Part shown: in pieces, positions 4,357-53,303 of the stretch
Position numbering within the stretch: position 1 is the first letter of the stretch
Layout of the letters: every line of letters begins with the position of its first letter
DNA from: Epithemia pelagica
Taxonomy: Eukaryota; Protista; Bacillariophyta
Assembly: GCA_946965045.2 (NCBI GenBank)
Contig: OX337231.1
Location: 124,001 to 188,000 of the forward strand
Direction: 5' to 3'
DNA: 64,000 nucleotides
The notes under the pieces: model-generated
The model's database searches: none
What the model was told of the DNA's origin: nothing
The model's input: the letters and a program-made list of their open reading frames with translations, nothing else
Made by a program: the position numbers and the translations under genes

Positions 4357-4447
4357 GATTGCTCGACTTGGTGATGAGATATGTTGATATGTGTCCTGCA
4401 ATGTCTTAGTCGAAAACTTTAGTAATGTCTTGTGCTTCGTGATGAGA

Positions 4448-4570
4448 ACCCGGATGTAAAAGTCTCAACCCGGATGTGTGGTGTGCCTTCTGAACCCGGA
4501 TGTGCCACGTGTGTGCCACGTATGAAGTACCCGGATGTGTGTTGTGATGTCCAAAAGGTAACCCGGATGT
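4448..4570. repeat. Five copies of ACCCGGATGT in the copia 5' leader
   Basis: Exact 10-mer at 4448, 4468, 4494, 4529 and 4561. Confidence 0.9.
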
Positions 4571-4957
4571 GCGGAACTTGGTTTTGTCTCCGGTTTGGTG
4601 TGAAAACTACTTAAAGTTACTTATTCTTGGTCACTTCCAGACTCGTTGCGGTGATCGAGTTGAACCGGAGATTCAGTAACAGAAGGCGGCTTGTTCGTCG
4701 TACTCGTAGTAGTCCTCAACAAAAGTGGTTCACTGGTTGGATGAGTATTGGGAAGGTAGTTGCACGGAGTCCTGGTGCAGCTTGAGGTCCTGGAATAGGA
4801 GAGGGTTGGTGACCCTAGCCTTAGCCAGGCTGGCCCTGTTGATGGGTTGAGTAGCTTTGTCCTCTAACTCTTGTTTGTTGTGGTAGCTCAATCTGTAACG
4901 GGTGTTGATGGGTAAGTGAGGTTTCAATTGCAACTGCAGGGAAATAAGCAGTGAGAC

Positions 4958-5777
4958 TGTTAATCTAGTAGAATTCCGTCAGTACACGCTCTAGAAGAGC
5001 CACAATCGATTACCAACTGATACCAAGGTTCTCCACGGGTCAGAGAACAAAGGAAACCCAAGGGTTCTATCGTAGGGATAGCCAGGACACTGAAGACGTG
5101 ATGATATGGTAATGTTAATGATTGTGAGCTTACTACTAGGTTTGGTGTGTGAGATTTCCATTCTTGTTGTCGATCGTGTGAAATAGGTTCTTGGCGGTGA
5201 TAGGTCTGGAATGGTTGGAGTTGATGTATGTGAGGTATATAACATGTATATGTGCTTGTATATCATATACAGCCTCAACGATTCTTGGCTAAAGTTGGTA
5301 TATGTAGTTTTGTTGGCGCGTCCTTGTTTGCAATCTTGAAATAGTGGGAACGATGATATGGTCTCGCGTGATCGTGATTCGTGCCTTGTGTACTTAGACC
5401 GTTGGGTCGGATACATGATCGCCACGCTCGGATAGTTCTTGCGCGCATCTTGACGAATTTGGGCGCGCACGCTTAGGGCATAGGTCAGGCTCGGATGTTC
5501 AACGGATGATCGTTCGTTGATAGGATATCAAGACCAAAGTTGAGTCTTGATAGCACGTTCGTCAATCTGTTCTCACTTTTTGGTATATGCGACCGAAATA
5601 TAGGTTGAGCTAGCGCGAAGCTAGGTATGTAGTGTGGATATAGGTGATGTAGGTGATGTTTGAATCCACGGGACTCGACTAACCGATGAGGTGCCGAACC
5701 TAACCGATGATTTTCGGTGAGAGTTCTACTAGGCGCGAAGCCCCTCTAACTAAAAATCATGGTCCAGAGATGTTACA
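4958..5777 (-). repeat. Probable 5' LTR of the copia element (inner boundary uncertain)
   Basis: Starts TGTAACA at 5777 and can end ...TTAACA at 4958. An alternative inner boundary is near 5026, because a 9-nt tRNA-iMet-like PBS (TGGTATCAG) occupies 5017-5025. The partner LTR is not in the window. Confidence 0.5.
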
Positions 5778-6580
5778 TGGATGATTGTTAGGTGGCGGTG
5801 GACCTCAACCTCCTTGAGGTGCGCAATGGCAATGGCCATTTCCACGAACGAGTGTCGCGTTCATCACGACTTTGGGAGTCAGATTCAGATGATGGTATTC
5901 TTTGTCCCCAAATCCCACAAACGTACGAATTTTTGATTTTTAGTTCGCGCTGCTCGCCTCAATCTACGAGTACTGATCCGAATTGTGCCTTATGCCCTTA
6001 CTTCCGACCACGAACAATAATAAAGTAGCTCTCTTAGTACAATAAAGTGGGCATAAGGCATAAGGCATGAGGTGAACGGTGAACATTTCAAATAATGACG
6101 TCCGAACCTAAGAGCGGGCATCACGCCCAACGTAGATCGCATTCTGGTTGGTAAGCTGGTCTTGTTCCTGACAATCAATATATGCCCACACACCCTCGGC
6201 TTAAATGGCTGTTTTTTTGTTCTTGGTTGGTCCTCAATAATTAGCAGCGAGTGAGGAACGGTGCACCGTTTGGAGATTTTTCATGGCAACCCAACCGACC
6301 TGGCCATGAAACAACACTCCGTCCTCTCCAAAGAGAGCCAACCGTGCCCTCCAAACAACAATGGAGCGACCCCTAAGTGGTTGACGATCTTCCTAAGCAG
6401 GGGAATGTCTCAACGCCGCTGACGCAACGGTAATTGCAAGCCCAACGCCCCAACATGGGCCAACAACTAGAGACTATGCTTCTAATTTTTCGACAAGAGC
6501 GTCCTTTTGGAAAGGTCCAAGAAACGAACTCGTTTCTCGTCGTCGCTTGTCCATTGAAACCATTGTTGAAAAGTAAAACC

Positions 6581-8046
6581 ATGATCAAGACTCTTGTTGT
6601 TCAAGGTAGTATTGCAGTCCTCCTGTTGCTCCTGTTCGGGACGGACGAGACGATGGCTGCTACTCCGGTTGCCGCCTCGCAAGTTGCTCCTCCGGCGGCC
6701 GCTCCCGTTGCTATTGGTGGCATCAACACGATTGAGACTGCCGTTGAACCACTCGCGGTCTGCAAGACTTTTGAGGTACTTGCGGACGAAAATTGCCAAA
6801 GTCAAGCGACCGCCCAAGCCTTTTACGGTGGACCTCGCGATCCAGATACATTGTTGTTTTCGGTTTCTCGCTCAGCCCCGTACGGTTTGGGCACCACTAC
6901 TGTCAGCTTGACCGTCGACGACAAAGCTGCAGGCATAGAAGAAGCATGCGACGATGCTTCTATCAAGGTGCTACCACTGGTACAGCCGATCTGTAACAAT
7001 GTGGTTGTGACGGCCAACTCGAGCTGCCTTGGTTCCGTCACAGACGTCAAAGAGTTATATGGTGGAACTTGTGTCGATGATAATTTACTGGCTTTTATCG
7101 TTTCCGAATCAGGGCCGTTCCCTGTTGGCACCAGTAATGTTCAGTTGACGATCATTGATGGTTGGGGGGAGCAGAAAGATGCAATGCTTCCATCACCGTG
7201 ACGAGTACTACACCCGAATGTTCGAATGGTGGTGGTTCTGGCAAGAGCCCCATCTTCTTGTTGGTCAAGTTATTGTTCCGATGGCTCAAGAATGGTGGGT
7301 TTGAGAAAATCATTGATTTAATCGGTGCGATTGGTGGAAACGGCAAAGGAGGAAAAGACAAAGGAAAGGATGGTAGTCGTCGCAACGGTCGTCGTCATCC
7401 TCGTGCGGCCGCAGCAGGACAATGCCAACTGTTTGAAAGCAAGGGAGTTCCGACTGCAGTCAATCCGAGCGCCACTCAACAGGATGTGCAAACGATTTTG
7501 GGCCACATGCAAGATGGCACGAGCGTTTCGGTCTCGACGCTCCGTTCCCTCTACCTTTCCTTGTTGTCCGGTTTGGACCTGGACGACACGACACAGATTG
7601 ATTTGGAGGTCTTGGTGGAAGATGCCTTGACTGCAATCGACCTCAATGGAGATGGATCGATTGATGCGAGCGAAATGGATCAAGTGCAGCTCCCACGCCA
7701 GATGGGAGACTTCCTCTTTGATGATGTCATGGCGTGCACGTCATCCAACTTTCAGACGTCGTCTGGAGAAACATGTGTGACACCCGATAATGTCGTGGAT
7801 TTTTTGAACCAGTTTTATGCTGGTACCGAGGTGGTGAGTGCTGACTTGGCTCGGGAGATTCGTGAGAAGAGTGGTTCCGATGCCTGTTACACCCGTGAAG
7901 AGTTTGAGGCAGCGTTTGGTGGCGCTGCTCCGACGCTTTTCGAGAAAGAAAATTTGTTGGCGGGTGTTGCGGCTCACCAGCAGCAGTCCACGGTTGCTGG
8001 GACGGCTGGCGTGGCTGGTGCAGTCGGAACCGCTGCTGGAATGTAA
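6581..8046 (+). CDS. Secreted protein with two HYR/Ig-like repeats and a C-terminal EF-hand region; split by a frameshift at a G6 run (7164-7169)
   Basis: Signal peptide MIKTLVVQGSIAVLLLLLFGTDETMA. The two repeats end PYGLGTTTVSLTVDD..C and PFPVGTSNVQLTIIDG|GAERCNASITV. The second ORF (7162-8046) continues repeat 2 in the -1 frame and contains the canonical EF loop DLNGDGSIDASE. Confidence 0.8.
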
Positions 8047-8439
8047 GAACAGGATTCGCTTTGTTGTGTTGTACACGACGATGAATGAGTACTATAACAC
8101 TACCTCCCTCTTAGCAATAATGAATGTGTATGTTTTCTGTATGCTTCTTCTCTACTAGGTAGACGACATTCTTGGCTTATATGATACGATACTTGTCATG
8201 GGTCGTTACTATGCTTCAGCGAATCTTGAAACTGTCTCATATGTGACCCTTGTTGCGACAACACACAAAAGTCTCGCGAACCAATCCGGACCCTCCCAAA
8301 TACCATTGGCCGAATATCCCCCACAAAACCAGCAGAAATCATCGTCCCTCTCAACTGTGGTTGGTCGAATATTCCCCCCAGCAAATGCCCAATTCCGAGA
8401 TCAGCAATCATCAGAGCTACAGGAGAATCATGAGGACCG

Positions 8440-9335
8440 AGACACTGGGATCCTCCGGCCATGCGGCACTGAACGCGTCGTCTGTGACACCCCAGTCTCT
8501 GGAGGACAACGAACAAGGCAAGACGCTCGCACTATACTGTCTGTCGTGTTGAACTTGTCGTCGTCGTTTCTCGTCCAAGAGGGTACAAAGCCCTTCACCA
8601 CAACCCACAGACACCAATGACAACCACCGAAGACATGATGGTTGTTGGTTGGTTGGATGGAGAGGCGTCTTGGGTTGACAAATGGCTGATACCCATAACA
8701 ACGAACCACTCTCCATAAGATCACATTCTGGTCGTGTTGTAGGGACACTTGTGTGTGTGTGTTTCAAGTTGGGAGGATTCAACTCGTGCACCACCCATGT
8801 CATGTTCGTTTGGCAACGCCTTGTTGGCGTGTCTACAAGACACGAGCGAATGGTTTCTTACCGCTGGGAATGTTGTTGTTGTTGCAATAGAGAGCCGCGA
8901 ATCCAGTCATACCGGTTGTCCTTGTGTCTCGCCACAACACACGAGAATCGTGACCCTGACGACATGTGTGTAGTAGGAAGACGACCACCCCCAACCATAC
9001 TCCAGGACCACCATTAGTGTCAGGAGAGCATTCGGATGTTCCCTCCTTCCTGGAGTGGTGTTGACAACCACAAAAACAACCCACAAGGAGAGAGCTTGAT
9101 TCGTGGGTCATTTGGAACCAGGACACTTGGTCCGACCACCAAGCCCACGACGGGTGCTGGACACAGGACCATTGTCACCTCTTCCTCCTCTTCCAGCTCT
9201 TGCAAACCAGTGGCACTGCTGGGACGACCCGTACGACGCCTTCAGACAGCCAAACACAGGACGGCAACGAGGAACGAGCGTGCACAGCAGACAACGCGGC
9301 CACCCTGTTCAGGTAGAAATGTATGACACGAATTT
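8440..9335. pseudogene. Degenerate duplicated segment, copy 1 (homologous to 12980-13800); product unknown
   Basis: Shares collinear blocks with copy 2, e.g. cagtctctgga, gtccaagagggtaca, gtgcaccacc, ttggcaacgc.ttgttggc and acttggtc.gacc. No long consistent ORF. Confidence 0.45.
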
Positions 9336-9466
9336 GGATTTGATGCGAGAGGAAATCGTTTGACAGCTCTGTTTTTGTGTAGGGTTGTTTTGTATGTCAA
9401 CTCAAAATCCAAGAAACGTCCGATAGCCGTCGTCACTTCTCCACACAAGGATATAATAGGACCCTT

Positions 9467-9467
<1 letters not shown>

Positions 9468-9562
<95 letters not shown>
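9468..9562. repeat. (GT)n microsatellite, about 47 units
   Basis: Directly visible perfect dinucleotide run. Confidence 0.98.
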
Positions 9563-9563
<1 letters not shown>

Positions 9564-10974
9564 TTGACGGTACGAACCTCCTGTACCATGGCCAATGCAC
9601 GGTTGATATTCGTGTCTGGTATACTGGCCGCGTTCTCCAAACAAGGGAACGTCGTCGTCCTCCATCTGCCGAATCCGGTCCATGGGCAGACAACGAAGAG
9701 GTGGATTTGGCACACACACCGAGTCCATGCCGTTTGCGACGTGACGTCTCCATCAAGTCACTGCCGCCGCCGCCGCCGCCATGAATGGTTGGGTGGGGAT
9801 GGGGATGTGCGCGACCCACCGTTCCACACACAACTGCAGTGTGGCTCTTGGGGTGTCGAGCCGAGTCGAACCTTCCGACCGGTCGTCCAGGGCGTTTCGG
9901 TTGGGTACACTTGTTGCAGCCTCTCGGAACCAGGTCCAGCCGTCCCCGCTCTGCCATCCAAGTGTGTACCGTACGGTCTACCCTCTTGGTCCAGGACCAC
10001 GACACGACCAGATCGATATAGTCGTAACCAAAACACTCTCCATTGTGGCCGTGTGTTGTGGACCGTAAAAGGTCTCTAGCAACGGGTCGTCATTCCTTTG
10101 GACTCTTGGTGCGTTGTGTGTTGTGTGTAGACGGCGCCCATTGAACGGAGGTCTTTGGTTCCTGTTGCTTCGTCCGAAAAAGAAAACGGTCACGAATCCT
10201 TGTGGATGGTCTCGTTCCACAGATCTCATGGTCGTGTATCAAAGACAATGACAAGGAGTCTCATCCTGTGTGGCAAGGGGCATGCCATGAACGACGATCT
10301 CTAGATAGATGTGTCGTGCCTTGTTGTTGGTGTGGCGTGTGGCTGCCGAGGCGCATGGGGGTCCCCCAAGTTTTGTTTGCGATGAACCTGTCATTTCTAG
10401 ATTTCAGAATGGAGACGGGCTAGGCTAGGTAGCCTCGAGGTAGCTCCAAAAGTGCTATAGGCTATAGCACAACAACTATTATTGGTCGGCTGTTATTGAA
10501 GCTGTCCTGAGAGAATACTGAAAAAGAAAGCCGAGAATAAGAAACAAGAGAGAAAGTGACGTACTCTCTTGAATATGGAAACAGGGATCAGTCGCCGGGT
10601 GCCGGTTGCCGCTCGTTTTCTGGTCATTTATCACCTTACTATTTACTATCCTGTATCCTGTCTCCACCAACTATCAATGCAAACTGCAACCCATACTGAA
10701 GCCAGATAGATTAGGGACAATTATTGTTTATAGTACTAGCCACTACATGAGAGGATCACTCTGGGATCTGGGATCTGGGATACCTCAAGCTGATTGTGCT
10801 TTCTAAAGATACTCTTGCTATCTCGATGAGTCCCGAATTCCTATCACTCCGTGTAGTTTTAATTGAAACTATCTAAATGTAAAGAGTAGAGAATCTTGTA
10901 ATCCAAAGTGATACGATAGGGCGTTCTATCAATATATTAGTAGTATGTAATTCCAGGCGGGGTTCTAATTCCTA

Positions 10975-11544
10975 CTCCCTCCTGAAAGAAAATACTTCAC
11001 GGTTTTTTTTTGTTATTTTAGTCGCATAAAAAGATTACGTAGGATCTGGTACAACTCTACAGGAGGACGGCCGGCTCATTCGGAGTATAAAAATTTTAGA
11101 ATAATATGGGGGAACATATTGGTTGACCTGCGCGAGTCTACACTATTATAGGAAAAGTACAACTTTTGTGTGCGACGAGTGAGCAGCACCATGGCCAAAG
11201 GTGCCGTCGTTGACCATGGAATTCAGCATGGAAATGGCACGAATCTTGTCAGTCGCACACATATTCCTACTCTTTGATGCCTCGAGGGGCCGCCCTGAAG
11301 AGGACGTGTTTGGAGCCGCCATAGAAGTGTCAACCGGTGGGCTCTGAAGACCAATGCTCAAAATCACGCCTTTTGAACAATCGTATCTCGTTCCAAAGCA
11401 AGAATCGAACATATAAATAATACACCAATATAGAGCTAATAAGTAGGGCTTTCTAACAAAAAAATTTTTTTGGAAAAAGGACGTTCGCTCGTGAAAATAT
11501 CGCTTTTTTGGTAAAATCGTGAAGTATTTTCTTTCAGGAGGGAG
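10975..11544. mobile_element. Stowaway-like (Tc1/mariner-derived) MITE, 570 bp
   Basis: Perfect 27-bp TIR CTCCCTCCTGAAAGAAAATACTTCACG (10975-11001) with its reverse complement ending at 11544. TA on both sides (10973-74 and 11545-46). Confidence 0.9.
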
Positions 11545-11936
11545 TAATTCTTTCTAATGTGTTGTTCTATAGGTGCTATCACGATTATAAATGTGAAATG
11601 ACTCTAGAGAGAAATCGACAGACACTGGAGACACCACGAAAGACAGCATGAACGATTGCATCTGCCCGGCCATTGTATTCGTATGTTCTATGCTTTCTGG
11701 AGCTTCGAAACTGAAGCAAATAATAGTACCTACGCCCTGCCCATGTTTTTGCCGAGTTGTGGAGGTACGACCAACAACCATACACCCCAAACACCAAACA
11801 CACATCATAGCGAAACGATAAACGATGTGCAACGATTTTCTGCAACTTGAGAGCTCATAAAACGGACACGCGTAGAAAAGACACAGAGAAACAGACCCCC
11901 ACATATAGCCTCCATTTCCTTGCTGCTTGTTTGACC

Positions 11937-26515: not shown

Positions 26516-29500
26516 CTAAGACGGTGGTGGTGGAGCTGTAGCGTGAGGAATTGGACCGTGAGTCATGCTGCCTCGTACATTCATGGGACGTGCCGGAGTG
26601 GCCATGGTATACCCACCCGATTCTCGTCGTTGTCGTCCCACCACGGGTGGAGGAGGAGGGGGTTGCTGCTGTGAGTGCGGTGGTGGTACTCGTTGTGGTG
26701 GTGGTGGACCACCATGTGTCATGCTCCCACGAACATTCATGGGCCGGGACGGTGTGGGCATGCTATAGCCACCCGACTCGCGTCGTTGACGCCCCACAAC
26801 AGGAGCCGGAGGAACAAAGGGTTGCTGCTGTTGCTGTTGTGGAGGAGCATGTGTCATGCTTCCTCGAATGTTCATGGGTTTCGACGGTGCTGCAGCTTGA
26901 TATCCCCCAGACACACGTCGCTGACGTCCCACAACCACTGGTGGTGGTGGACCACCCATGGGAAGATCATCGTGAGCCAAGTCGTACTTGTTTCCCATAT
27001 TGACACGGGTGCCATGGGCATTCAAGACGGGAGGAGGTGGTGGTGGCGGTCCAGTGCTGGCCCTTCTCATAGTGTAGGCACCCGATTCGCGACGTTGTCG
27101 ACCCACAACTCGTCGGACCGGAGACACGGGTGGATGGAGCGGATGACTTTCGGGCACATCGTACTTGCTCGTCGGAGGTGGTGGTGGTCCTCGAGTTCGA
27201 CCCGTGGCGACATTGGGAGGAGGAGCCTGTTGTGGTGGTGCATGTGGGTGTTGATGTTGCGCTGGTCCTCCTCCTCCTGATGGTGGTGGAGCCATGAGTC
27301 CGGCATTATAACTTTCCAAACTGGTCATGCTTCCATGAAGGTTGCTACGATGGCTATGAACGGGAGACATGGGCGGTGGCATGCCCTCCGGTCCGGCTTG
27401 AAAATTGCGCGATGGACGAGGAGGAGACAAGGTTGGTATACCATAAAGCTGCTGTTCTGGTTGTTTGGATTTGTTGTTGGAATCACCAAAGAGTCCCCGT
27501 GCCATGGAACCCAAGAGCGTTTTGCGAGGGGTATTGGGTGTTTCCGGAGGTGCTCCTTCCAGGGGTTGTTGCTGCTGAGGCGCGGACCACGACGGGGGAG
27601 GTGGTTTCAATGGTGGTCCACGACGAATTGGTGCTGCTTGTGGCTGGTTGTAGTAGGCACCACCGGCTGCTGCTGCAACAGGAGGACCAGCAGCCCGTGT
27701 TGGTCCATGCGGAGGTCCAGCATGAGGAGGCCGTTGTGGTGGTGGTGGCGATGGTCGGGCCGGTGGCTTGGAGTCTTCTTGCGAAAAGTAACTGACGGAA
27801 TCTACCGTATTGGTTTCTTCGGCCGTTGAATCCACTGAAACCGTTTCACAAACCGACACTCCATCTTCACCGCGACGACGGCGGCGCTTTTTCTTCTTCT
27901 TCTTCTTTTTGCGACGTTTCTTGTGCAGAGCCGTACTTTCTCCATCGTCACTCGAGGTTCCCGGCATGGGCAAGGCTCGTGTGGAGGCATAATTGTAATC
28001 GGCCAATCCCGCCATTTCTTCTTCTTCTTCGCCAGGCGAATCCTTGGCACGTCGTCCACGTCCCTTCTTGTTGTTGTTCTTGTTGGATCGACGGGAAGGT
28101 GGTGCCTGTTCGGGCAATTCTTGTTGTTGCTGTTCTGCGTGTCGTTGTCGTTTGCCGGGCGCATTGCACCAACACCGCACCAGCATCCACACGCCCAACA
28201 AGACGGCAATCAATCCAGCCCCGGCCGCGGCCAAAATCCACCAATCCAATCCTTGTGTCACAGAATCGACAAGGCTAGCACCTTCACCTTCACTGTTCCC
28301 TTCGGGATTGCCGGAATTGGTACCACCACCACCAGTGCCGCCCGTTCCACCAATGCCACCCGTACTTCCCCCCGTCCCCGAGGGTGGTTGGGTCACACTG
28401 CCATCGACAAAGGCCTCGAGCGAGTGCAACGAGGTAAAGAAATCGTGCCGATTCTGTTCCGCCATGGCACCGGGCAATTGCGCCTGGTATTGCAAGGATT
28501 GGACCAAATATTGAACGGCAGTGGGTTGTTCCTCCAAGACTTGATTTAATCGCGTGGCAAATTCTGCCACTTCCTCGACAACAATGTTGCCCCCCGTCAA
28601 CATGCCCGAAACTTGCAAGGAATCGGTATTGGCCAACTGACGGGGATCATTGTGATGCGTGTCCGTCAATTCTCGTTGTCGTCGATTGTTGACAAAAATT
28701 TGATTGTCCCACGCAATCTGAAAGACTTGAGAATAAATGGGTTCCAATTGCGCATTCCACCAGTCCACCAAGGCTTGACTCACAAAGGCTTGTTGGACGG
28801 CATCCAACTTGGTTCGGGCCGGCACGCCCTGCAACGTAATGTGCACGCGCGTTTGCACCGTCGTATAGCCCAAATAGGCGGCCCCAATATTGGCAGTGGC
28901 GGGCAAACTGGGCAAAATGGCCCCTTGCGAAAAGTCGGCCACGGCACTGGCGTAAATTTGCTCTTGAATCGTGCCCGAGGATAACGTCGTGTCATGCTGA
29001 AACACCAATTTGACAATGAGAAACTGACAGGCCGTCCAGCCCGGCACATTGCATTGCCCAACAAAGTTGCGAAACAGCGCCTTGCTCGAATCGGGCATGC
29101 GGAGATTGGCCGATTGGACATACGGTTGCAAGACGGCATTGGTTTGCAAAAATTGATCCACCTGAGCATTCACGGCTTGTTCAATGCGGCGATAATCGGG
29201 CGCGGCCAAGGTGGCATTGACAATGCTGGTCAATTCCAAGGCGGTTTCCGTCGTTAATGGAGGCGGCGGTTCCACTTGCCCTTGATTGTCGTCATTGGGA
29301 TTGCGATTGGTACAGACATCGCGTTCGTATTGCAAATGCCAGCGTCCCGAAAAGATGATGCGTAGACTGGTATCCAGTGTCGACGGAAAGGCTTGGCCCG
29401 CATCGTCAAATCCGCCTTTCATAGCGTCATTGGAGGGTAGGGCAAACGGATTGTCACCCGTGCCACCATTGTCGGGCATGGGATTGAACGGCAAGGGACT

Positions 29501-30298
29501 ACCGACAAACAGAGTCATGCGGGGACCACTCCGGCCTTGATCCTTGGGTTGTGCCATGGCATTGGTGGTATAGGTCAACCAGGGACCAGCGGCTCTTATG
29601 TAAAAGATGCGACGATCCAAGCGACCCAAGAGTACGCCACTTCCAGCTTTTGGGCCAAAGGCCGTCGTGGGAATCACGACGCGATCCCCGTCGGGATGCA
29701 AGACGGCCGTCGTATCGGCAATTTGGACAAAGGTACTTTGAATCGCGGCAAAGTCTTGTTCGTCGTACGTGGCATTGGAAATATAGATCCGAATGCGCCA
29801 ATCATAGTCCAAATCGGGAATTTGGGAATCGACGGCAATCTCCAACGTTTGCAAGTGAATCGGCTTGACCTTGCTGCCCAAATAAAAGACGAGCCCCGTC
29901 TTGCCCACGACGCGTTGCGTGTGATCCACATCGGTATCGGGATTATAAACCTCACTCCGCCAACAAGCGGGTTCGTCTTGAAAGGACGTCATTAATGTTC
30001 GCAAGGAGGAGGACGATTCGGAGGAGAATGGGATGCCGGCATTGCCGTTGCGCAAATGGAATGGCGATTTTGTTTTGGTAGGCACCAAGTGGATTGCATG
30101 CGAGTTTGGAAGTGTTGTGGTTGTGGTGGTTGGATCCAATCGTTGCAATTCCTCTAGTGGTTGCAATTCTTGTTGATGCTCTTGTTCAGTGAAAGCTACA
30201 ACACTTGCCGGATGCATCCGCATGACAACAATCAATAGAAGAAGAAGAGCCGCACAGGGCCAACCATCAGCTCCGCCTCGCACAACCCTTGCTGGCAT
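26516..30298 (-). CDS. Single-pass type I membrane protein (receptor/adhesin-like), 1260 aa, paralog 1
   Basis: Signal peptide and an ectodomain shared with 34441-38661 (ACWRSEVYNP...GLVFYLGSKVKPIHLQTLEIAVD). TM segment WWILAAAGAGLIAVLLGVWMLV, then a Pro/Gln-rich tail with repeated VVGRQRR[EV]SG[AG]Y motifs. Confidence 0.9.
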   Translation of the reverse strand: MPARVVRGGADGWPCAALLLLLIVVMRMHPASVVAFTEQEHQQELQPLEELQRLDPTTTTTTLPNSHAIHLVPTKTKSPFHLRNGNAGIPFSSESSSSLRTLMTSFQDEPACWRSEVYNPDTDVDHTQRVVGKTGLVFYLGSKVKPIHLQTLEIAVDSQIPDLDYDWRIRIYISNATYDEQDFAAIQSTFVQIADTTAVLHPDGDRVVIPTTAFGPKAGSGVLLGRLDRRIFYIRAAGPWLTYTTNAMAQPKDQGRSGPRMTLFVGSPLPFNPMPDNGGTGDNPFALPSNDAMKGGFDDAGQAFPSTLDTSLRIIFSGRWHLQYERDVCTNRNPNDDNQGQVEPPPPLTTETALELTSIVNATLAAPDYRRIEQAVNAQVDQFLQTNAVLQPYVQSANLRMPDSSKALFRNFVGQCNVPGWTACQFLIVKLVFQHDTTLSSGTIQEQIYASAVADFSQGAILPSLPATANIGAAYLGYTTVQTRVHITLQGVPARTKLDAVQQAFVSQALVDWWNAQLEPIYSQVFQIAWDNQIFVNNRRQRELTDTHHNDPRQLANTDSLQVSGMLTGGNIVVEEVAEFATRLNQVLEEQPTAVQYLVQSLQYQAQLPGAMAEQNRHDFFTSLHSLEAFVDGSVTQPPSGTGGSTGGIGGTGGTGGGGTNSGNPEGNSEGEGASLVDSVTQGLDWWILAAAGAGLIAVLLGVWMLVRCWCNAPGKRQRHAEQQQQELPEQAPPSRRSNKNNNKKGRGRRAKDSPGEEEEEMAGLADYNYASTRALPMPGTSSDDGESTALHKKRRKKKKKKKKRRRRRGEDGVSVCETVSVDSTAEETNTVDSVSYFSQEDSKPPARPSPPPPQRPPHAGPPHGPTRAAGPPVAAAAGGAYYNQPQAAPIRRGPPLKPPPPSWSAPQQQQPLEGAPPETPNTPRKTLLGSMARGLFGDSNNKSKQPEQQLYGIPTLSPPRPSRNFQAGPEGMPPPMSPVHSHRSNLHGSMTSLESYNAGLMAPPPSGGGGPAQHQHPHAPPQQAPPPNVATGRTRGPPPPPTSKYDVPESHPLHPPVSPVRRVVGRQRRESGAYTMRRASTGPPPPPPPVLNAHGTRVNMGNKYDLAHDDLPMGGPPPPVVVGRQRRVSGGYQAAAPSKPMNIRGSMTHAPPQQQQQQPFVPPAPVVGRQRRESGGYSMPTPSRPMNVRGSMTHGGPPPPQRVPPPHSQQQPPPPPPVVGRQRRESGGYTMATPARPMNVRGSMTHGPIPHATAPPPPS

Positions 30299-30555
30299 GG
30301 TAGAGTAGAGAATGTTGTTGTTGTTGTTGAGTCGTTCCTCTCTCCTGCCGGATCCTCTTTCACACAAGCGAACAATACTACTACCCAAACACAAGATGGA
30401 ATGAAAAAAATAAAACGAAACAATGATTGTTGTCACAGTGTGAAAGACATTGCACCGTTTCTTGGTTGTTGTTCGTAACCACACCGAAACATCCACCAAA
30501 CAGTCGGGACCCTATCAGTGTACAATCCGCGACTCGTTAGTTCCGTCACGGGTCA

Positions 30556-31045
30556 TTTACGTACATTACCCCCCTTCTTCAATACTGGTATCTGGTTGGG
30601 CTCATTCATCCCAGCAACATATCAGCCAAATAATCAAATTTACGTACATTACCCCTCTTCTTCAATGCTGGAATCTGATTGGGCTCATTCATCCCAGCAA
30701 CATATCAGCCAAAATATCACATTTACGTTTATTACCCCTCTTCTTCAATTCTGGAATCTGATTGGGCTCATTCATCCCAGCAACATATCAGCCATAATAT
30801 CACATTTACGTACATTGCCCCCCTTCTTCAATGCTGGAATCTGGTTGGGCTCAATCATCCCAGCAACATATCAGCCAAAAATCACACTTATGTACATTAC
30901 CCCCCTTCTTCAATGCTGGAATCTGGTTGGGCTCATTCATCCCAGCAACATATCAGCCAAAAATCACACTTATGTACATTACCCCCCTTCTTCAATGCTG
31001 GAATCTGGTTGGGCTCATTCATCCCAGCAACATATCAGCCAAAAT
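30556..31045. repeat. Tandem array of six 82-83-bp units
   Basis: Unit TTTACGTACATTACCCC(C)CTTCTTCAATGCTGGAATCTGGTTGGGCTCATTCATCCCAGCAACATATCAGCCAAAATATCACA, with periods 83, 83, 83, 82, 82. Confidence 0.97.
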
Positions 31046-32445
31046 CCCTCGGTATCAGTGTCAACTGCTTAGCTGTTTTTTGTCTGTGCCACCTTCATAG
31101 GTTCCCAAGTGGACACAGACAGAAAATTTCCTTTTTGACGCAAATGGAAATGACTAAATTGCAAATTGGCACGCATACCCAGCTGGAGTTTTCGCAGTTC
31201 ATGAAACAGACGCATGCCCAGCAAGCGGCCCTGCGTGGATGACGGTTGCAGAATGCGCCATCCAAATTCCAAATCCCCCATAAAACCACACAGAGGCCAT
31301 CACCCACAATGGCATGGCATGAATTGTCGCCTTTCATGCAGTTGAGGTAAGTTTGAACGTACAAAAATGTCTCCATGACAACAACAGCTTTTGAACTGTC
31401 ATTCTAACTTCTCCCTCACACTTGTATTCGTTTTTCTCTTCTGATATTCAACATTCGACAACTGTCTCTCTCTCTGTCCACTTCATTGAGAGTGAATGTT
31501 TGTGCCTATGGAATGTCAAGTCTCCATTCAAGCCTCGGCTTAAAATTGGAGACCACATAGAGCTTCTTTCTTTGTATACTACTCCTAGGAGTTTCTATCA
31601 GAAGTTTATTTCCTATCTTATTGATTTTGTAAGATCGTGCGTGTTATTGCCGTGCTTTCAACCACCATGACACTCTGGTGAAGGTTTGGGGCCATCTTGA
31701 AGCAACTGATCGACTCTGTGATCTACGAAGACTAGTTTGAGTAGGCCTAGTGGCAACAAGCTGCCTTAGTTTGTTGTCATCTCTAGGTCTATGTACTTGA
31801 GTATCCGACACACAAAGAAAGGTTCTTGATCTGTGATCGACATGGAGATGGACTAGGCGAAGCACAATGATGAGAGTAAAAATCCATGCTACAAAGATAA
31901 GAACACAACCAACAATCAAGGAGCACTACGATTAGAGCAAGGAAAAGTTGTGGCAAACGGCCTACAATGACTTGTCCTCCGTTTGATTGCGACAAAATCA
32001 AAGGAGCACCAACCATCAGCATTAACAGGGACAAAGATTAATGAGATAACGTGTGAGATAACTACGCAGGACATGAAAGAAGCTAAGAGACAAACAACAA
32101 GCAACAAGAGAGAAAAACCAACCAAAATACTACTTCAGGTCGCAAGGATTCATAAAGAGCTCGCTTCATGGTCAATGTCGACTGTCGATGCTTTTGACAT
32201 CGCGTGAGATTTTTGTGACGAGACGAGAGTCGTGTGAAAGGATTCCAAATTTGAATCGTGGTCACGGTCACAGGAAGATGCTAACCGCCAACTGTCACTT
32301 GCACGCCGGCATTTCCACCAGCACGAGGAACCATATTGGTGAAAAGGACAGACGAAAAGTGAAATTTTCTGTCTGTGTCCACTTGGGAACCTATGAAGCT
32401 GGCACAGACAAAAAACAGCTAAGCAGTGGACACTGATACCGAGGG
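31046..32445. mobile_element. Non-autonomous TIR element E1 (1400 bp, about 85-bp TIRs starting CCCTCGGTATCAGTG)
   Basis: The left end from 31046 and the reverse complement of the right end at 32445 match over 85 bp with 2 mismatches. No transposase ORF and no TSD. Confidence 0.85.
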
Positions 32446-32605
32446 TTTACGTACATTACCCTCCTTCTTCAATACTGGAATCTGGTTGGGCTCATTCATC
32501 CCAGCAACATATCAGCCAAAATATCATATTTAGGTACATTACCCCCCTTCTTCAATGCTGGAATCTGATTGGGCTCATTCATCCCAGCAACATATCAGCC
32601 AAAAT
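32446..32605. repeat. Two more copies of the 83-bp unit between E1 and E2
   Basis: Units at 32446-32528 and 32529-32605. Confidence 0.97.
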
Positions 32606-33970
32606 CCCTCGGTATCAGTGTCCACTGCTTAGCTGTTTTTTGTCTGTGCCATCCTTACAGGTTCCCAGGTGGACACAGACATCATTTTTTGCTTTTGAGA
32701 CAAATAGAAATGATCAAATGGCAAATTGGCACGCATACCCAGCTGGAGTTTTCACAGTTTGAAACAGACGCATGCCCAGCAAGCGGCCGTGCGTGGATAA
32801 CTGCTGGTTGCTCCATAATTCATAATGACAAGTACACAATTCTTTTCTCTTGTTGCCGAAGCACATCGTACGAATTACGAATGGCATTCCAGGTGAGTGT
32901 GATCCGTTGCCAATTGCCATGACAATTACATAGCTCATGCTCACTGATCACTGACACTTGTCACTTTTGTTTGCTCTGCTCATGGGAAGAGAGGCGATCA
33001 TCTGTTGTGTCTCTGGGTAGCTCATTACGTGCCATTCTACATGTCGAAATGACGGATTTTTGATAACTTTCATTCAATTCATAAACAGACTGCAGACATT
33101 GTTTTCTTTATATACTAGGAGTAGAAATAGAACTCAAGTGCTATTCATTCGTAGAGTTCAGTGCATTCTGAATTCGTTGCAGATCTCTTTTCTGTTTTGA
33201 GCATGGCAATGACTCTCAGTTTCACCATGAACACAAGCAGCTCTCACACGCTACAGCTACATCTTTTGACTCTATGAACTGATAGACATGGAAAGTAGGG
33301 TGTGGCAAGAGCAAGAGGGCTTCCCATCTATTTGAAGCAAAAACAACAAAGTGTTCGGTCATTGAGAAATGAGATGATGCTACGACCTATGACGATAGTG
33401 AATCATCTATCCTACAGAAGACATGAAAGCAACCAACCAACAATCAAACAACAAAACAATTACTCCTACATCAACAAATGAGACGGGTAAGATACTCCAG
33501 TTGACATCAAGCGGCTTGTTCCTAGTCTACTCGTTCAACAAGAGACAAGCCAAAGGATCATGCATGAACAAGAGGAAAGATTGCAGCAGTGATGAGTGAG
33601 AAGAAAGAAAAAGAAACAAGAAGATTAGAAATAAGCCACAGTAGTGAGAAGTGAGAAGCAGTTCAGGTTCAGCCCAGCATGTTGCATCCATTGTTCTCAC
33701 CTCACGTCATGGTCAAGCATTTGGCTCGGTTTTTGGTGTTTTGTGACAGACGAGGACGGGAGGGTTGCCCAAAAAATTTGAATCGTGGTGACCAGAGGAC
33801 AACCACCAACCGTCAACTGTCACATGCACGCTGGCCTTGCTCCAACCCTGAGGAATTTTATTGGGTAGACAGACAGACGAAAAACATAAAATGCTGGCTG
33901 TGTCCACTTGGGAACCTGTGAAGGTGGCACAGACAAAAAACAGCTAAGCAGTGGACACTGATAACGAGGG
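32606..33970. mobile_element. Non-autonomous TIR element E2 (1365 bp), diverged relative of E1
   Basis: Same TIRs (CCCTCGGTATCAGTGTCCACTGCTTAGC... / ...GCAGTGGACACTGATAACGAGGG). About 200 bp of subterminal sequence is shared with E1, while the core is strongly diverged. Confidence 0.85.
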
Positions 33971-34050
33971 TTTACGTACATTACCCCCCTTCTTCAATGC
34001 TGGAATCTGGTTGGGCTCATTCATCCCAGCAACATATCAGCCACAATATC
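33971..34050. repeat. Single terminal copy of the 83-bp unit
   Basis: TTTACGTACATTACCCCCCTTCTTCAATGCTGG...ATCAGCCACAATATC directly after E2. Confidence 0.95.
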
Positions 34051-34440
34051 AGTGACCTGAAAGTTGGTGGGGCCTGGGGGAGCTTCCGTTGGTCAGTCAG
34101 TCCGTGTCATTCGTCGATCTGTCAATCTGTCATTCGGTCTGCTTGTCATTTTCCGTCCGTCTGTCTACCCGATGGGGCAAAAAGACCAGACTCCGCCCCT
34201 CCTACGTTCGGGACTCGGGAGTCTTGCGACTCGTTGGCCCCTCTCGTCACAATCTACGACCATGGAAACTCCCCCAACCAGAACCAGGACACATCCCGAC
34301 CACACCCAACAATTCCTTTGGGGGCTTGCTCCTCTTGTTTATTTCATTTTCTATAGTATCTTCAATAAAGAGAGTCGTTGTGGTTGTTGTCGGAAACACC
34401 AACAACAACAACAACAACAACACGAAACCAAACGCGAAAC

Positions 34441-37400
34441 ATGGCGGCTGCCACCCAAAAATACGGCAATTTGTTGCGGCTGCTGCTCTTGTGGCTCGTC
34501 GTGTCGACTTGCATACAAGCAACAACCACAACCACCACAACAATCACAACCACACCAATCACAAGTCGCAGACCTCACCACCAAGGATTGTTGTTGAATC
34601 GTCACTTGACCACAAACGACAAGAATAATCAAGATCCAGCCTGTTGGCGGAGTGAAGTGTACAATCCCAACGCCGACGCGGATCACAAACAACGGGTCGT
34701 CGGCAAGCATGGACTCGTCTTTTATCTCGGCAGCAAAGTGAAACCCATTCACTTGCAAACGTTGGAAATTGCCGTCGATTCCAACATTCCTGACTTCGAC
34801 TACGATTGGCGCATTCGCATTTACAGTTCCAATGCTACATATTACGACGAACAAAACTTTACATCGATTCAAAGTACCTTTGTGAAACTTGCCGATACCA
34901 CGGCCGTCTTGCATCCCGATGGCGATCGGGTCGTGATTCCCACCACGGCCTTTGGTGAAACGACTGGCCATGGCATTCAATTGGGTCGCTTGGATCGTCG
35001 CATTTTCTATCTCCGAGCCGCCGGTCCCTGGTTGACCTATGCCACCAATGCCTTGCAACAAGCCAAGGATCAAGGGGCCAGTGGTCCTCGCATGACATTG
35101 TTTGTCGGAAGTCCGATTGTGGTGGAACCGACCGATACAAACACGGGCGATAATCCCTTTGCCCTACCCTCCAATGACAATGACAATGACAATGACAGCA
35201 AGGGCGGCTTTGACGACCCCACTCAAGCCTTTCCCACGACATTGGATACCAGCATTTCCATTGTCTTTTCGGGACGCGTGCATTTGCAATACGAACGCGA
35301 CGTTTGTCTCAATCGCAATGACGACAATAATGACAATGCACCAGTCGAACCTCCGCCACCCCTCACCACCACGACGAGCCTCGAACTGGTCAGTCTCGTC
35401 AATGCCACCTTGGCCGCGGCCGATTATCGACGCGTTGAACAAGCCGTCAATGAAAAAGTCGATGAGTGGTTGGCCTCCAATTCCATTTTGCAACCCTACA
35501 TTCAATCCTTCCGGCTTAACATGCCCGAGTCGAGCAAGGCCCTGTTTCGCCCGTTTGTGGGCCAATGTCGAGGATGGACGGCCTGTCAGTTTCTCATTGT
35601 CAAACTGGTTTTGGAACATGACGAGACCCTTCCCCCAGGAATGGTCGAATCGCAATTCTTTGCCTCGCCGTCTCAATGGTTTGAGGAAGCCATTCGACCC
35701 AGTCTACCGGCCACGGTTGAGGCGGTCGATGCGAGTTATCAAACCGTGCAAGCACAATTCCAGGTCACCTTGCACGGCGTACCATCTCAACTCGACTCGA
35801 TGCAACAAGACTTTTTACAGCATCACCTGGTTCGCTTTTGGAATGCCCGGCTCCCGGCCTTGTATTCTAAAGTCTTTTGGATGTCGGTCGACACGCAACT
35901 CGTTGTGACCAATCACAACAACAATAATAATGCCTTGCAAGTGTCGGGTGTGGTCACGGGCGGTCACAGTGTCCTGCAAGAACTGGCCGAATTCGACAAG
36001 GGCCTGACGGCCCTGTTTTCCAACACTGCCAATTCCCGGTATTTGGTGCAATCCTTGCACTACGACTCGCTCTTGCCCGGTCCCATGGCCCAAGACAATC
36101 GTGCAGACGTGTTTGCCTCGTTGCACTCGATCCAAGCCCTGGTCGAGGGAACCACCACCCTCGCTGGTAATGGTAACAGTGGTAACCCTGCATCTCCCAA
36201 CACGGACGGATCCACCAGTCCCTCCTCCGAGGACTCTACGAAAAGTGGTATTCTGGACACGTTCGAGTGGTGGATGTGGGTCCTTTGCGGAGGGGGATTG
36301 GCTTTGGTACTGTTGGCCGTTTGGCTTGTCCTTTATTGTTGTTGGTGGAACAATGCTCCAGGCAAACGACCCTCTGCGGCAGCGCGAGGAACAGGACATG
36401 CACCACACGAACAACCATTGGGCGGGAACAATGCTACCAAACACAATCAGAGCCAACAACGCCTAAAGCGAGGATTGACCACGGCCTCTTCGACCACGAT
36501 TCCAGACAGTACTCCTTCGGCCGAAAACAATTTTGCCTCCACCTTGGCCTTGCCCCTGCCCGTCAAACAGCGCGAGGAGTCGGATCATGCCTTGAATCAA
36601 TTTGTGCAGGACCAACAAGCACAACAATCAATGTCTATGGTGCCCGTCTCGGCCATTGCCGTCACGGCGCCCTTTGGCCACACCAGGCCACAACCGGCTC
36701 GTAATGGAGTATACGACACGGAAGTGCCTTCGAATCAACCAACAGCATCACCACCAGGACAGTTCAGCAACAACAACAGGGCTACTCCAATGAATTCACC
36801 TTCTCCTCTTCCTGGTGTTGCTTTGGCCCCCGGCAGTACCATGACAACGACATTCGGGGATCATGGTCTTTCTCCACAAGGACCGCAACTACAATCACCA
36901 CAGGGTGCACCTGTCCGGAACAGCCGACCGCCATTGCAACAACAACAATCCATACCGGTTCCCCCACTACTACGACAACAAACGAGTAGTATGAGCCAAG
37001 GCCCCTGCGTTCAACCCCAAGCACCAACAACCACACAGTCTTGGATCGTGAACCATTCACCCAACACGGGCAATCCGCCACAGCAACCAACACCATCCGA
37101 CCAAACAACACCCACTAATACATCACCTCGCAAGAAATTTCCAACCTGGCTGACCACTGGTGTGTTTGGTAGTAATGCTCCGTCGTCCTCCTCTCCAACG
37201 AGACCAACAGCAGCAGTACAAACGCCATCTCCGCAGTCCCCTGTGCGTCACAATGCTCCTTTACCAGCCTCAACGGTCATGCCACCACCGCCCTTGTCGT
37301 CGTCATATACTCCTCGCACGAATCCCATGACAGGGCCACAAGCACCACAATCCTCCGCAGCCTCTTCACCCCGCCAACAACAACAACAACAATCTGTCCG

Positions 37401-38661
37401 GAATCCACAACAACCACAAGGCATTCGTCCTGTGGGAGCTCCACTATCGACGACAACTACACCATTTTCTCCAACCAATCCACCACCACACCCCGCGGTG
37501 ACGCCCGACAGTCCCGAACTAGCAGCACAAGGAGGAGGAGGGTCTCCCCGGTCTCCCGTTTCCGCCGGCCGACGACTTCGACCCCTGGCATCGTACCACT
37601 TGGGGAGTATTAGTGCGGTTGGTGGTCAATCGCAATCGCCACAAGTAATACCACTATCGCCACAACCAGCCTCCCCACGAATGACTCTCACGGCAAGTCC
37701 TGTACCCCCGACGGATAAAACAGACCCTTCTTCCCAGCAGCGCCAGTCAGGGACGCCTCCCAACACTACTACGGTTCCTCCCACGCAACTCTCACCGTCA
37801 CGGTCTTCTCCCCCGGTTGTCGTGGGAAGTCAGCGACGTAGTTCGGGAGTGTACGAAAACACGCTGCCGTCGAAACCAATCATGAATATTCGAGGAAGCA
37901 TGGTACAACAAGCTCGACCTGTACCACAACAACAGCCACCAGCAATGCAACACCAACCCGGACAACAACAACCGTCACCTTCTCGTAGTCCACCCGTCGT
38001 GGTGGTGAATCAACGCCGCGTATCAGGTGTTTACGAAACGACCACGCCCAGCAAACCAATCATGAATATCCGAGGAAGCATGGTACAACCAGCTGCACCA
38101 CCTGTACAATCCGCACCGCCAGTAGCTGGTGCACCATCCGTCGTGGTGGGGAGTCAGCGCCGCGTTTCCGGTGTTTATGAAACGACCGCACCATCCAAAC
38201 CCATGAATATTCGAGAGAGCATGGTACAACAAGCAGCTCCACCCCTACAACCGTCACGAGCAACTGATCCACCACCCGTTGTCGTAGGAAGTCAACGCCG
38301 TGTTTCTGGTGTTTACGAAACGACCACACCCACCAAATCAATCCTGAATATTCGAGGGAGCCTGGTACAACAACAACAACAACAAGTTGCTCCACCCATG
38401 CAACATTCACCAGCCGCTGATCCACCACCCGTTGTCGTAAGGAGTCAACGACAAGTGTCGGGCGTTTACGCAACGACCACACCCAGCAAACCAATTCTGA
38501 ATATTCGAGAAAGCATGGTACCACCAGCTCCGCCAGCCGCACCAGAACAAGAACAACCACAACCAGCACCACAAAAAGTGGCAGGGAATCCATCACCTTC
38601 CATCACGGTCGACAGGGAACCAAGGGCACCCTTTAAGGAACCCCATTCGCAACAGATGTAA
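34441..38661 (+). CDS. Single-pass type I membrane protein (receptor/adhesin-like), paralog 2
   Basis: Signal peptide MAAATQKYGNLLRLLLLWLVVSTCIQA and an ectodomain homologous to paralog 1. TM segment WWMWVLCGGGLALVLLAVWLVLYCCWW, then a P/Q/S/T-rich tail with five VVV.SQRR.SGVY...NIRGSM repeats. Confidence 0.9.
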   Translation: MAAATQKYGNLLRLLLLWLVVSTCIQATTTTTTTITTTPITSRRPHHQGLLLNRHLTTNDKNNQDPACWRSEVYNPNADADHKQRVVGKHGLVFYLGSKVKPIHLQTLEIAVDSNIPDFDYDWRIRIYSSNATYYDEQNFTSIQSTFVKLADTTAVLHPDGDRVVIPTTAFGETTGHGIQLGRLDRRIFYLRAAGPWLTYATNALQQAKDQGASGPRMTLFVGSPIVVEPTDTNTGDNPFALPSNDNDNDNDSKGGFDDPTQAFPTTLDTSISIVFSGRVHLQYERDVCLNRNDDNNDNAPVEPPPPLTTTTSLELVSLVNATLAAADYRRVEQAVNEKVDEWLASNSILQPYIQSFRLNMPESSKALFRPFVGQCRGWTACQFLIVKLVLEHDETLPPGMVESQFFASPSQWFEEAIRPSLPATVEAVDASYQTVQAQFQVTLHGVPSQLDSMQQDFLQHHLVRFWNARLPALYSKVFWMSVDTQLVVTNHNNNNNALQVSGVVTGGHSVLQELAEFDKGLTALFSNTANSRYLVQSLHYDSLLPGPMAQDNRADVFASLHSIQALVEGTTTLAGNGNSGNPASPNTDGSTSPSSEDSTKSGILDTFEWWMWVLCGGGLALVLLAVWLVLYCCWWNNAPGKRPSAAARGTGHAPHEQPLGGNNATKHNQSQQRLKRGLTTASSTTIPDSTPSAENNFASTLALPLPVKQREESDHALNQFVQDQQAQQSMSMVPVSAIAVTAPFGHTRPQPARNGVYDTEVPSNQPTASPPGQFSNNNRATPMNSPSPLPGVALAPGSTMTTTFGDHGLSPQGPQLQSPQGAPVRNSRPPLQQQQSIPVPPLLRQQTSSMSQGPCVQPQAPTTTQSWIVNHSPNTGNPPQQPTPSDQTTPTNTSPRKKFPTWLTTGVFGSNAPSSSSPTRPTAAVQTPSPQSPVRHNAPLPASTVMPPPPLSSSYTPRTNPMTGPQAPQSSAASSPRQQQQQQSVRNPQQPQGIRPVGAPLSTTTTPFSPTNPPPHPAVTPDSPELAAQGGGGSPRSPVSAGRRLRPLASYHLGSISAVGGQSQSPQVIPLSPQPASPRMTLTASPVPPTDKTDPSSQQRQSGTPPNTTTVPPTQLSPSRSSPPVVVGSQRRSSGVYENTLPSKPIMNIRGSMVQQARPVPQQQPPAMQHQPGQQQPSPSRSPPVVVVNQRRVSGVYETTTPSKPIMNIRGSMVQPAAPPVQSAPPVAGAPSVVVGSQRRVSGVYETTAPSKPMNIRESMVQQAAPPLQPSRATDPPPVVVGSQRRVSGVYETTTPTKSILNIRGSLVQQQQQQVAPPMQHSPAADPPPVVVRSQRQVSGVYATTTPSKPILNIRESMVPPAPPAAPEQEQPQPAPQKVAGNPSPSITVDREPRAPFKEPHSQQM

Positions 38662-52589: not shown

Positions 52590-53090
52590 TACAGCCTTTG
52601 TATTCCGTTCTGTGATCAAACGAAATAGTGAAGTGGATTATATATCCTGCCTTACTTTCTGGTCCTAGAGTATGGTTAATGGTATGCTGTCACAGCCCTT
52701 GTCTGTTCCATTCTTTGATAAGTGAAGTGCATCTGAAATGCTGCCTTAGTTCCAAGTCCTAGAGTATGGATAACGGTTTGCTGTTACAGCCCTTGTCTGT
52801 ACCATTCTTTGATCAAACGAAAAAGTGAAGTCGATGATATATGCTGCCTGTTTCAAGTCCTTGAGTATGGTTAACGGTTTGCTGTCACAGCCCTTGTCTG
52901 TTCTATTCTTTGATCAAACGAAAAGTGAAGTGGATGATATATGCTACCGTATTTTCAAGTCCTAGAGTATGGTTAACGGTTTGCTGTTGCGTCTATTATC
53001 ATTCTTGGTAATTGCGAGGGTGGTGATAGAGAGTATATGGTTAACGGTTTGCTGTTGCGTCTATTATCAATGATGGTAATTGCGTAGATG
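52590..53090. repeat. Imperfect tandem repeat of about 94-102-bp units followed by a shorter duplicated sub-unit
   Basis: GTCC(T/C)(A/T)GAGTATGG(T/A)TAA-type anchors at 52662, 52756, 52857 and 52959. ATGGTTAACGGTTTGCTGTTGCGTCTATTATCA is repeated near 52970 and 53037. Confidence 0.9.
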
Positions 53091-53303
53091 GTGAAAGTAA
53101 CTCTTTTCATTTTTTATTGGAGTGTGCATTGTCTGGACCACAAAACACAAGAAACGGTACGGAAACAAGTGAATCATGGACTCTTCTTACCACAGGAAGT
53201 TGATGTGTAGTTTGTGCATAGTTTCGTGGTAATTGTGTATGTTTGTATCCATCCTCTAGAGAGAGGCAATCTACCATTTACATGTTTCTTTCGGCAAGTT
53301 GCC

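Follow-up and report, generated by a model that had tools for sequence, protein, structure and literature searches.

Three subfamilies of one inverted-repeat element family at a single junction of an 83-bp repeat array in the diatom Epithemia pelagica

Three separately mobile subfamilies of transposable elements, here termed E1, E2 and E3, occupy the same junction of an 83-bp tandem repeat array in two haplotypes of the diatom Epithemia pelagica. They are subfamilies of one dispersed, non-autonomous cut-and-paste family with a length of ~1.3–1.4 kb, terminal inverted repeats (TIRs) of ~91 bp and conserved ends of ~200 bp. E1 and E2 lie in the window, which is the whole 64,000-nucleotide stretch that was analysed (contig OX337231.1, positions 124,001 to 188,000), and E3 lies on the other haplotype. 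The best explanation, to which we give a probability of about 0.55, is an old insertion and its duplication, followed by whole-element replacement through break repair that copied an ectopic family member.

The array (window 30556–34051) is laid out as six units, E1, two units, E2 and one unit. Units start at 30556, 30639, 30722, 30805, 30887 and 30969 upstream of E1, at 32446 and 32529 between the elements and at 33971 after E2, and their pairwise identity is 92–97%. The upstream block W1–W6 (30556–31045, plus strand) contains six 82–83-bp units, of which the last is cut to 77 bp and lacks ATCACA; W7–W8 (32446–32605, plus strand) measure 83 and 77 bp, and the last unit, W9, spans 33971–34051 on the plus strand. 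An element-free unit junction reads AAAAT-ATCACA-TTTACG, with ATCATA and ATCAAA as variants of the 6-bp motif, and is the AT-richest part of the unit. At E1 and at E2 it reads CAAAAT|CCCT...AGGG|TTTACG, with the 6 bp gone and no duplication present. Coordinates and junction reads thus agree with a sequence-only reading of this DNA, which had described the layout, the identical junctions and the loss of ATCACA without a target-site duplication (TSD). The window is identical base for base with contig ctg1200l of ENA ERZ21939226 over 24441–48661, although that contig probably comes from the same read set and so is not independent.

Best named hits, to Amphiprora (72%) and Seminavis (67%), likewise point to a diatom host. 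The array occupies the upstream region shared by two divergently oriented, paralogous host genes. Gene 1 (26516–30298, minus strand) encodes 1260 aa and gene 2 (34441–38661, plus strand), its inverted paralogue, 1406 aa; their N-terminal regions are 68% identical, each protein has one predicted membrane span, and neither has a Pfam domain on record. A protein search with the two gave four hits only, all apparently from the same assembly, with the allele 89% identical. Elsewhere in the window, a small tandem array with 101-bp and 68-bp periods lies between two antiporter genes (52603–53094), and in the interval 1–11700 inversions distinguish the haplotypes (window and locus L004), as does a 6.8-kb insertion that contains a hAT-like open reading frame (ORF). 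At 30507–30520, ~30 bp are deleted relative to the allele and the filler CTATCAG gives a 9-base match to the TIR, a weak sign of what may be TIR-templated repair.

E1 (31046–32445, plus strand; 1400 bp) is a young non-autonomous TIR element with dispersed copies that are 98.5–98.7% identical to it. Its left TIR (31046–31135, plus strand) begins CCCTCGG and its right TIR occupies 32355–32445 on the minus strand. E2 (32606–33970, plus strand; 1365 bp) is an older subfamily member, and on the other haplotype E3 occupies its place. The E2 TIRs lie at 32606–32696 (plus strand) and 33880–33970 (minus strand), with the terminus of the right one mutated to CCCTCGT. Left and right TIRs (~91 bp) are 96.7% identical in E1 and 90% in E2, which has seven mismatches per 77 nt compared to zero to two in ten other copies. 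From these most decayed TIRs, E2 is probably the oldest occupant; no second copy of it was found in the DNA sampled. The outer ~200 bp of E1 and E2 are 76–89% alike, and the outer ~50 bp of the TIR is common to all subfamilies. The cores share ~51% identity, which upholds the earlier description of diverged cores between near-identical TIRs; they are nonetheless related, being collinear and homologous, with a score of 76 versus 29 ± 3.4 in shuffles. No conserved ORF was found between subfamily cores, and indels do not keep frame. TIRs, absent coding capacity and dispersed near-identical copies with sharp ends are all present, as in MITE-like elements. A scan of viral and prokaryote genomes gave no exact TIR match, and one exact match in metagenomes is bacterial-type and was attributed to chance.

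The allele (locus L010, contig ctg1223l), reached through the right-hand gene, consists of five units, E3 and one unit, and between the two haplotypes the flanking DNA is 96–98% identical. E3 stands at the same junction and in the same orientation as E1 and E2, and its core is 77% identical to that of E2 and 52% to that of E1, so that the three cores span 51–77%. Window E1 differs from dispersed E1 by 1.3% (98.7% identical) and is of the E1 type at 278 of the 280 columns that are diagnostic, between nt 53 and nt 1348; allelic E3 is E3-type throughout and differs from dispersed E3 by 3.5% (96.5% identical). As dispersed copies match both E1 and E3, divergence in place is excluded. Identical junctions and homologous cores are what would be seen if a single insertion had been copied locally and the copies had diverged where they stood, or if the assembly had joined two alleles, but such an origin is very improbable: E1 and E3 are each far nearer to dispersed copies than to E2, and the second haplotype is assembled separately with a different element inside. 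The earlier view had disfavoured a simple recent duplication, and a local one is indeed excluded; it had also seen the junction as re-used by different elements, which the third subfamily on the other haplotype bears out.

Other copies were located with a spurious 70-codon gene call on the E1 left end as a probe, through its protein cluster, which lists at least ~20 family placements across both haplotypes of the same assembly. Eight independent insertion sites besides the array locus were examined, which makes nine sites with the array junction. Five of the eight hold full-length copies at the E1 identity given above, two hold diverged E1 relatives (~93% and ~84%) and one holds E3; independent mobility, as had been suggested, is therefore borne out. 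No 83-bp unit lies within 10 kb of any of the eight, which refutes the suggestion that the family targets or co-propagates with the repeat. The related notion of a cassette array would account for three occupants at one junction, but it is largely refuted and hardly credible: no recombinase lies near the array, where the flanks hold host genes only, no cassette at the eight other sites abuts the repeat, the unit folds no better than shuffles (z −0.4 to +1.1), and no Rfam match reaches the gathering score. A hit to Wolbachia sRNA 46 in Rfam scored below gathering and reflects the facing TIRs. Within the sampled DNA, the unit occurred only at the window locus and the allelic one, viral contigs gave no match to it, and no outer TIR pair encloses the array. 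The array is a local tandem repeat of the host, and the family would be moved in trans by a transposase that is probably PHIS/Spy-like.

No transposase gene or autonomous copy of the family was found in the DNA sampled. A Harbinger element (DDE_Tnp_4 plus DUF6818) beside an E1 copy was considered as an autonomous partner, but its TIRs are different ones and it is no more than the host of that copy, so it was rejected; a search with its transposase found no second copy. This two-gene element occupies L014:8290–12890 and is adjoined at L014:13183–18263 by a multi-ORF DDE_Tnp_4 element with 31-bp TIRs; both are PHIS elements. At L005:11889–14942, a 1017-aa ORF without a convincing Pfam match belongs to a 51-member family with 95–99% identity, which is likely an unannotated transposon. 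At L007:8837–13308, E1 and E3 stand head to head, 127 bp apart, in a region with a 1590-bp duplication (99.6% identical); the breakpoints of this duplication fall within the two cores, and ~60 bp are deleted at the same point. This rearranged pair indicates that family elements do undergo internal breaks.

Flanks at the nine sites are AT|AT (three), AT|TT (two), AA|TT (two), AA|AT (one) and TA|TT (one). Of the 18 half-sites, 17 have A at position −2 (p ~2e-9), all have A or T at −1, and 11 have C at −6 (p ~8e-4, uncorrected for the 12 positions looked at). Direct duplications span 0–2 bp only, with none at three sites, and the filled sites have no consistent duplication but a flank pattern of A[A/T]|[A/T]T (AW|WT). 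Judged from these flanks, the simplest reading is that insertion may be blunt into this pattern. The only empty paralogues at hand are the normal unit junctions, which are 6 bp longer; for the dispersed copies, the search yielded no empty allele (L012 is also filled and L013 is not syntenic), nor was a paralogous empty site found in the sampled DNA. The sequence-only reading had held that copies at random sites with ordinary TSDs would speak against it. The copies do lie away from the unit, but the nine filled sites show no consistent duplication.

The family resembles Spy elements of the PHIS group, which have TIRs, lie at AT-rich, roughly palindromic sites, typically have non-autonomous copies of 1–1.5 kb and lack a TSD (PMC4122938), as the family here may do. 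Blunt insertion has been proposed for Spy, which Han et al. (2014) described as the only eukaryotic cut-and-paste group without TSDs and found only in invertebrates (PMC4122938). In contrast, the present host is a diatom, the family ends are CCCTCGGT compared to the Spy terminal motif GGANNNNG, and the target is AW|WT, with the Spy target AAA|TTT at one of nine sites. The diatom family seems to work in the manner of Spy but cannot be filed as Spy. All of its copies bar one mutated end have CCCT...AGGG termini, which are the piggyBac motif, but TTAA, CTAG or any other 4-bp duplication occurs at none of the nine sites; the earlier judgement that neither the Spy nor the piggyBac rule fits was sound. 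PIF/Harbinger elements differ by their 3-bp TWA duplication (zero of nine sites here), and the neighbouring Harbinger in L012 and L014 has TIRs unlike those of the diatom family. Helentrons and HINEs insert between T and T and have subterminal rather than terminal repeats, whereas the repeats here are long and terminal and T|T occurs at two of nine sites. ISL2EU elements (PHIS; PMC4482050) share an AT-centred target, and AT|AT flanks occur at three of nine sites, but six sites have no AT duplication and none has the full A|AT|T context. No diatom case of TSD-less cut-and-paste transposons was found in the literature, and a diatom TIR family without a consistent TSD is apparently undescribed.

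A divergent piggyBac- or ISL2EU-type transposase could make a 2-bp AT duplication that is masked by differing repair of mismatched overhangs, which would suit the piggyBac-like CCCT ends, the AT|AT sites and, weakly, a local repeat motif at L008 that fits a single AT slightly better. It is quite unlikely, given that the six sites without an AT duplication involve copies that are mostly 1–2% diverged, that one site is TA|TT, and that left and right classes fit independent halves with no 4-bp pattern. A masked AT duplication would change the target rule and not the swap of elements at the junction.

The replacement history that we favour begins with one old insertion, probably E2, that would have created the 6-bp-short junction. 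The two element ends may have joined at permissible cut points separated by 6 bp, which read AT|AT at the left and, depending on the junction variant, AA|TT or TA|TT at the right. A single uncoordinated insertion, or else a deletion next to it, could have produced such a scar once. Three of the four AWWT sites in the unit are grouped at the junction, which would explain the position of this first insertion. Unequal exchange may then have copied a unit-unit-element block in the window haplotype, or fused two alleles, as unit markers suggest: W7 bears the first-unit marker, and W7–W8 are nearest to W1–W2, with seven differences per 160 positions compared to 9–13 for other units. This marker argument depends on few bases. 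The 4.4% divergence of W7–W8 from W1–W2 exceeds the 1.3% of E1 from its relatives, so E1 would have arrived after the duplication. The resident would have been replaced whole at least twice, by E1 in the window and by E3 on the other haplotype, and the likeliest route is homology-directed break repair anchored in the shared outer ~50 bp of the TIR. The E1-type columns (nt 53 to nt 1348) imply that the swap covers everything inside this shared outer part.

Replacement of this kind has been observed or proposed elsewhere. In Drosophila, one P element can precisely replace another at an occupied site via their shared ends (PMC3887531). That is a laboratory result with P transposase, whereas the present case involves natural alleles with cores 51–77% alike and a route that we infer. 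Among Alu elements, a different subfamily at the same locus has led to the same two rival explanations, full replacement by gene conversion and near-parallel insertion (PMC554112), although these are 300-bp retroelements compared across species and here a 1.4-kb DNA element has three occupants in two haplotypes.

Independent hits on one site are rarely expected by chance, with 4e-5 to 0.015 triple-hit sites for 1000 insertions in a genome assumed, from 986 windows, to measure ~63 Mb. Several observations count against replacement: triple hits by chance are expected if 10,000 insertions have occurred historically and the target is narrow; no chimeric element was seen, although conversion sometimes leaves one; and the ~550 bp downstream of the array hold two more elements on the allele, which marks the region as an insertion hot area. 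The main rival, tentative and distinctly less probable than replacement, builds on such points. Blunt excision would let the ends reseal to CCAAAAT|TTTACG. The resealed site would be an almost ideal target, lying in open chromatin between two promoters, and other subfamilies would transpose into it afresh, or a freed element would be captured at the open break. Both half-sites match the family pattern, including C at −6; the left half-site CCAAAAT (31039–31045, plus strand) is identical in all seven bases to that beside an unrelated insertion (L006); and absent chimerism and the crowding of the allele are as re-insertion would have them. However, ~1 million AWWT sites compete, or ~50,000 with C at −6, and the short form occurs at none of the element-free junctions in the arrays of the two haplotypes. 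All three elements also share a single orientation, for which chance alone gives p = 0.25.

One of the two additional allelic elements bears on a further alternative. Element F (L010:8604–9859; window 34296/34303) has 42-bp TIRs starting ATTCGCC and an interior 82% like the E2 core, so that one core occurs in two TIR families. In its place the window has six extra bases, CGACCA, which also occur at 34257–34262 and are possibly repair filler. If the transposase deleted 6 target bases at each insertion (target AW-N6-WT), a normal junction would be an empty site and the three insertions would be independent. The normal junctions, as the sole true empty paralogues, are indeed 6 bp longer, and F, with its shared core, likewise occupies a place at which the window is 6 bases longer. 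This alternative is nonetheless unlikely: three hits on one locus are still required, the TIRs of F differ from those of the family and its flanks are not AW, and the recurrence of CGACCA 40 bp upstream is what repair filler would produce. To our knowledge, no DDE transposase systematically removes target bases. Undescribed transposase chemistry as a whole, whether a regular exchange of members at an occupied site or 6-bp target removal with each insertion, is doubtful; if true, each of these reactions would be a first among eukaryotic TIR transposons. The other additional element (L010:8224–8436; window ~34130) is a palindromic MITE of 200 bp whose ends are GG...CC and which is flanked by a TCA duplication; the window haplotype lacks this MITE. 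The cores of E1, E2, E3 and F alike have a T-rich first half and an A-rich second half, are CpG depleted (0.5–0.7) and have a conserved donor-like motif, GGT(A/G)AG, near nt 305; they are possibly a decayed gene or a foldback.

An apparently TSD-less family and the replacement of one element by another both have precedents in kind, in Spy and in P and Alu elements, respectively. With its different ends and looser AW|WT target, the diatom family would be a second TSD-less instance beside Spy and, if this reading is true, a route to a blunt-inserting transposase. With three subfamilies at one junction in two haplotypes, the same insertion site need not mean the same element, which calls for caution in presence/absence genotyping from shared sites. 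The locus is a rare natural test case of whole-element replacement versus re-insertion. Judging from gene positions, swaps of elements in the shared upstream region could alter expression of the two divergent genes.
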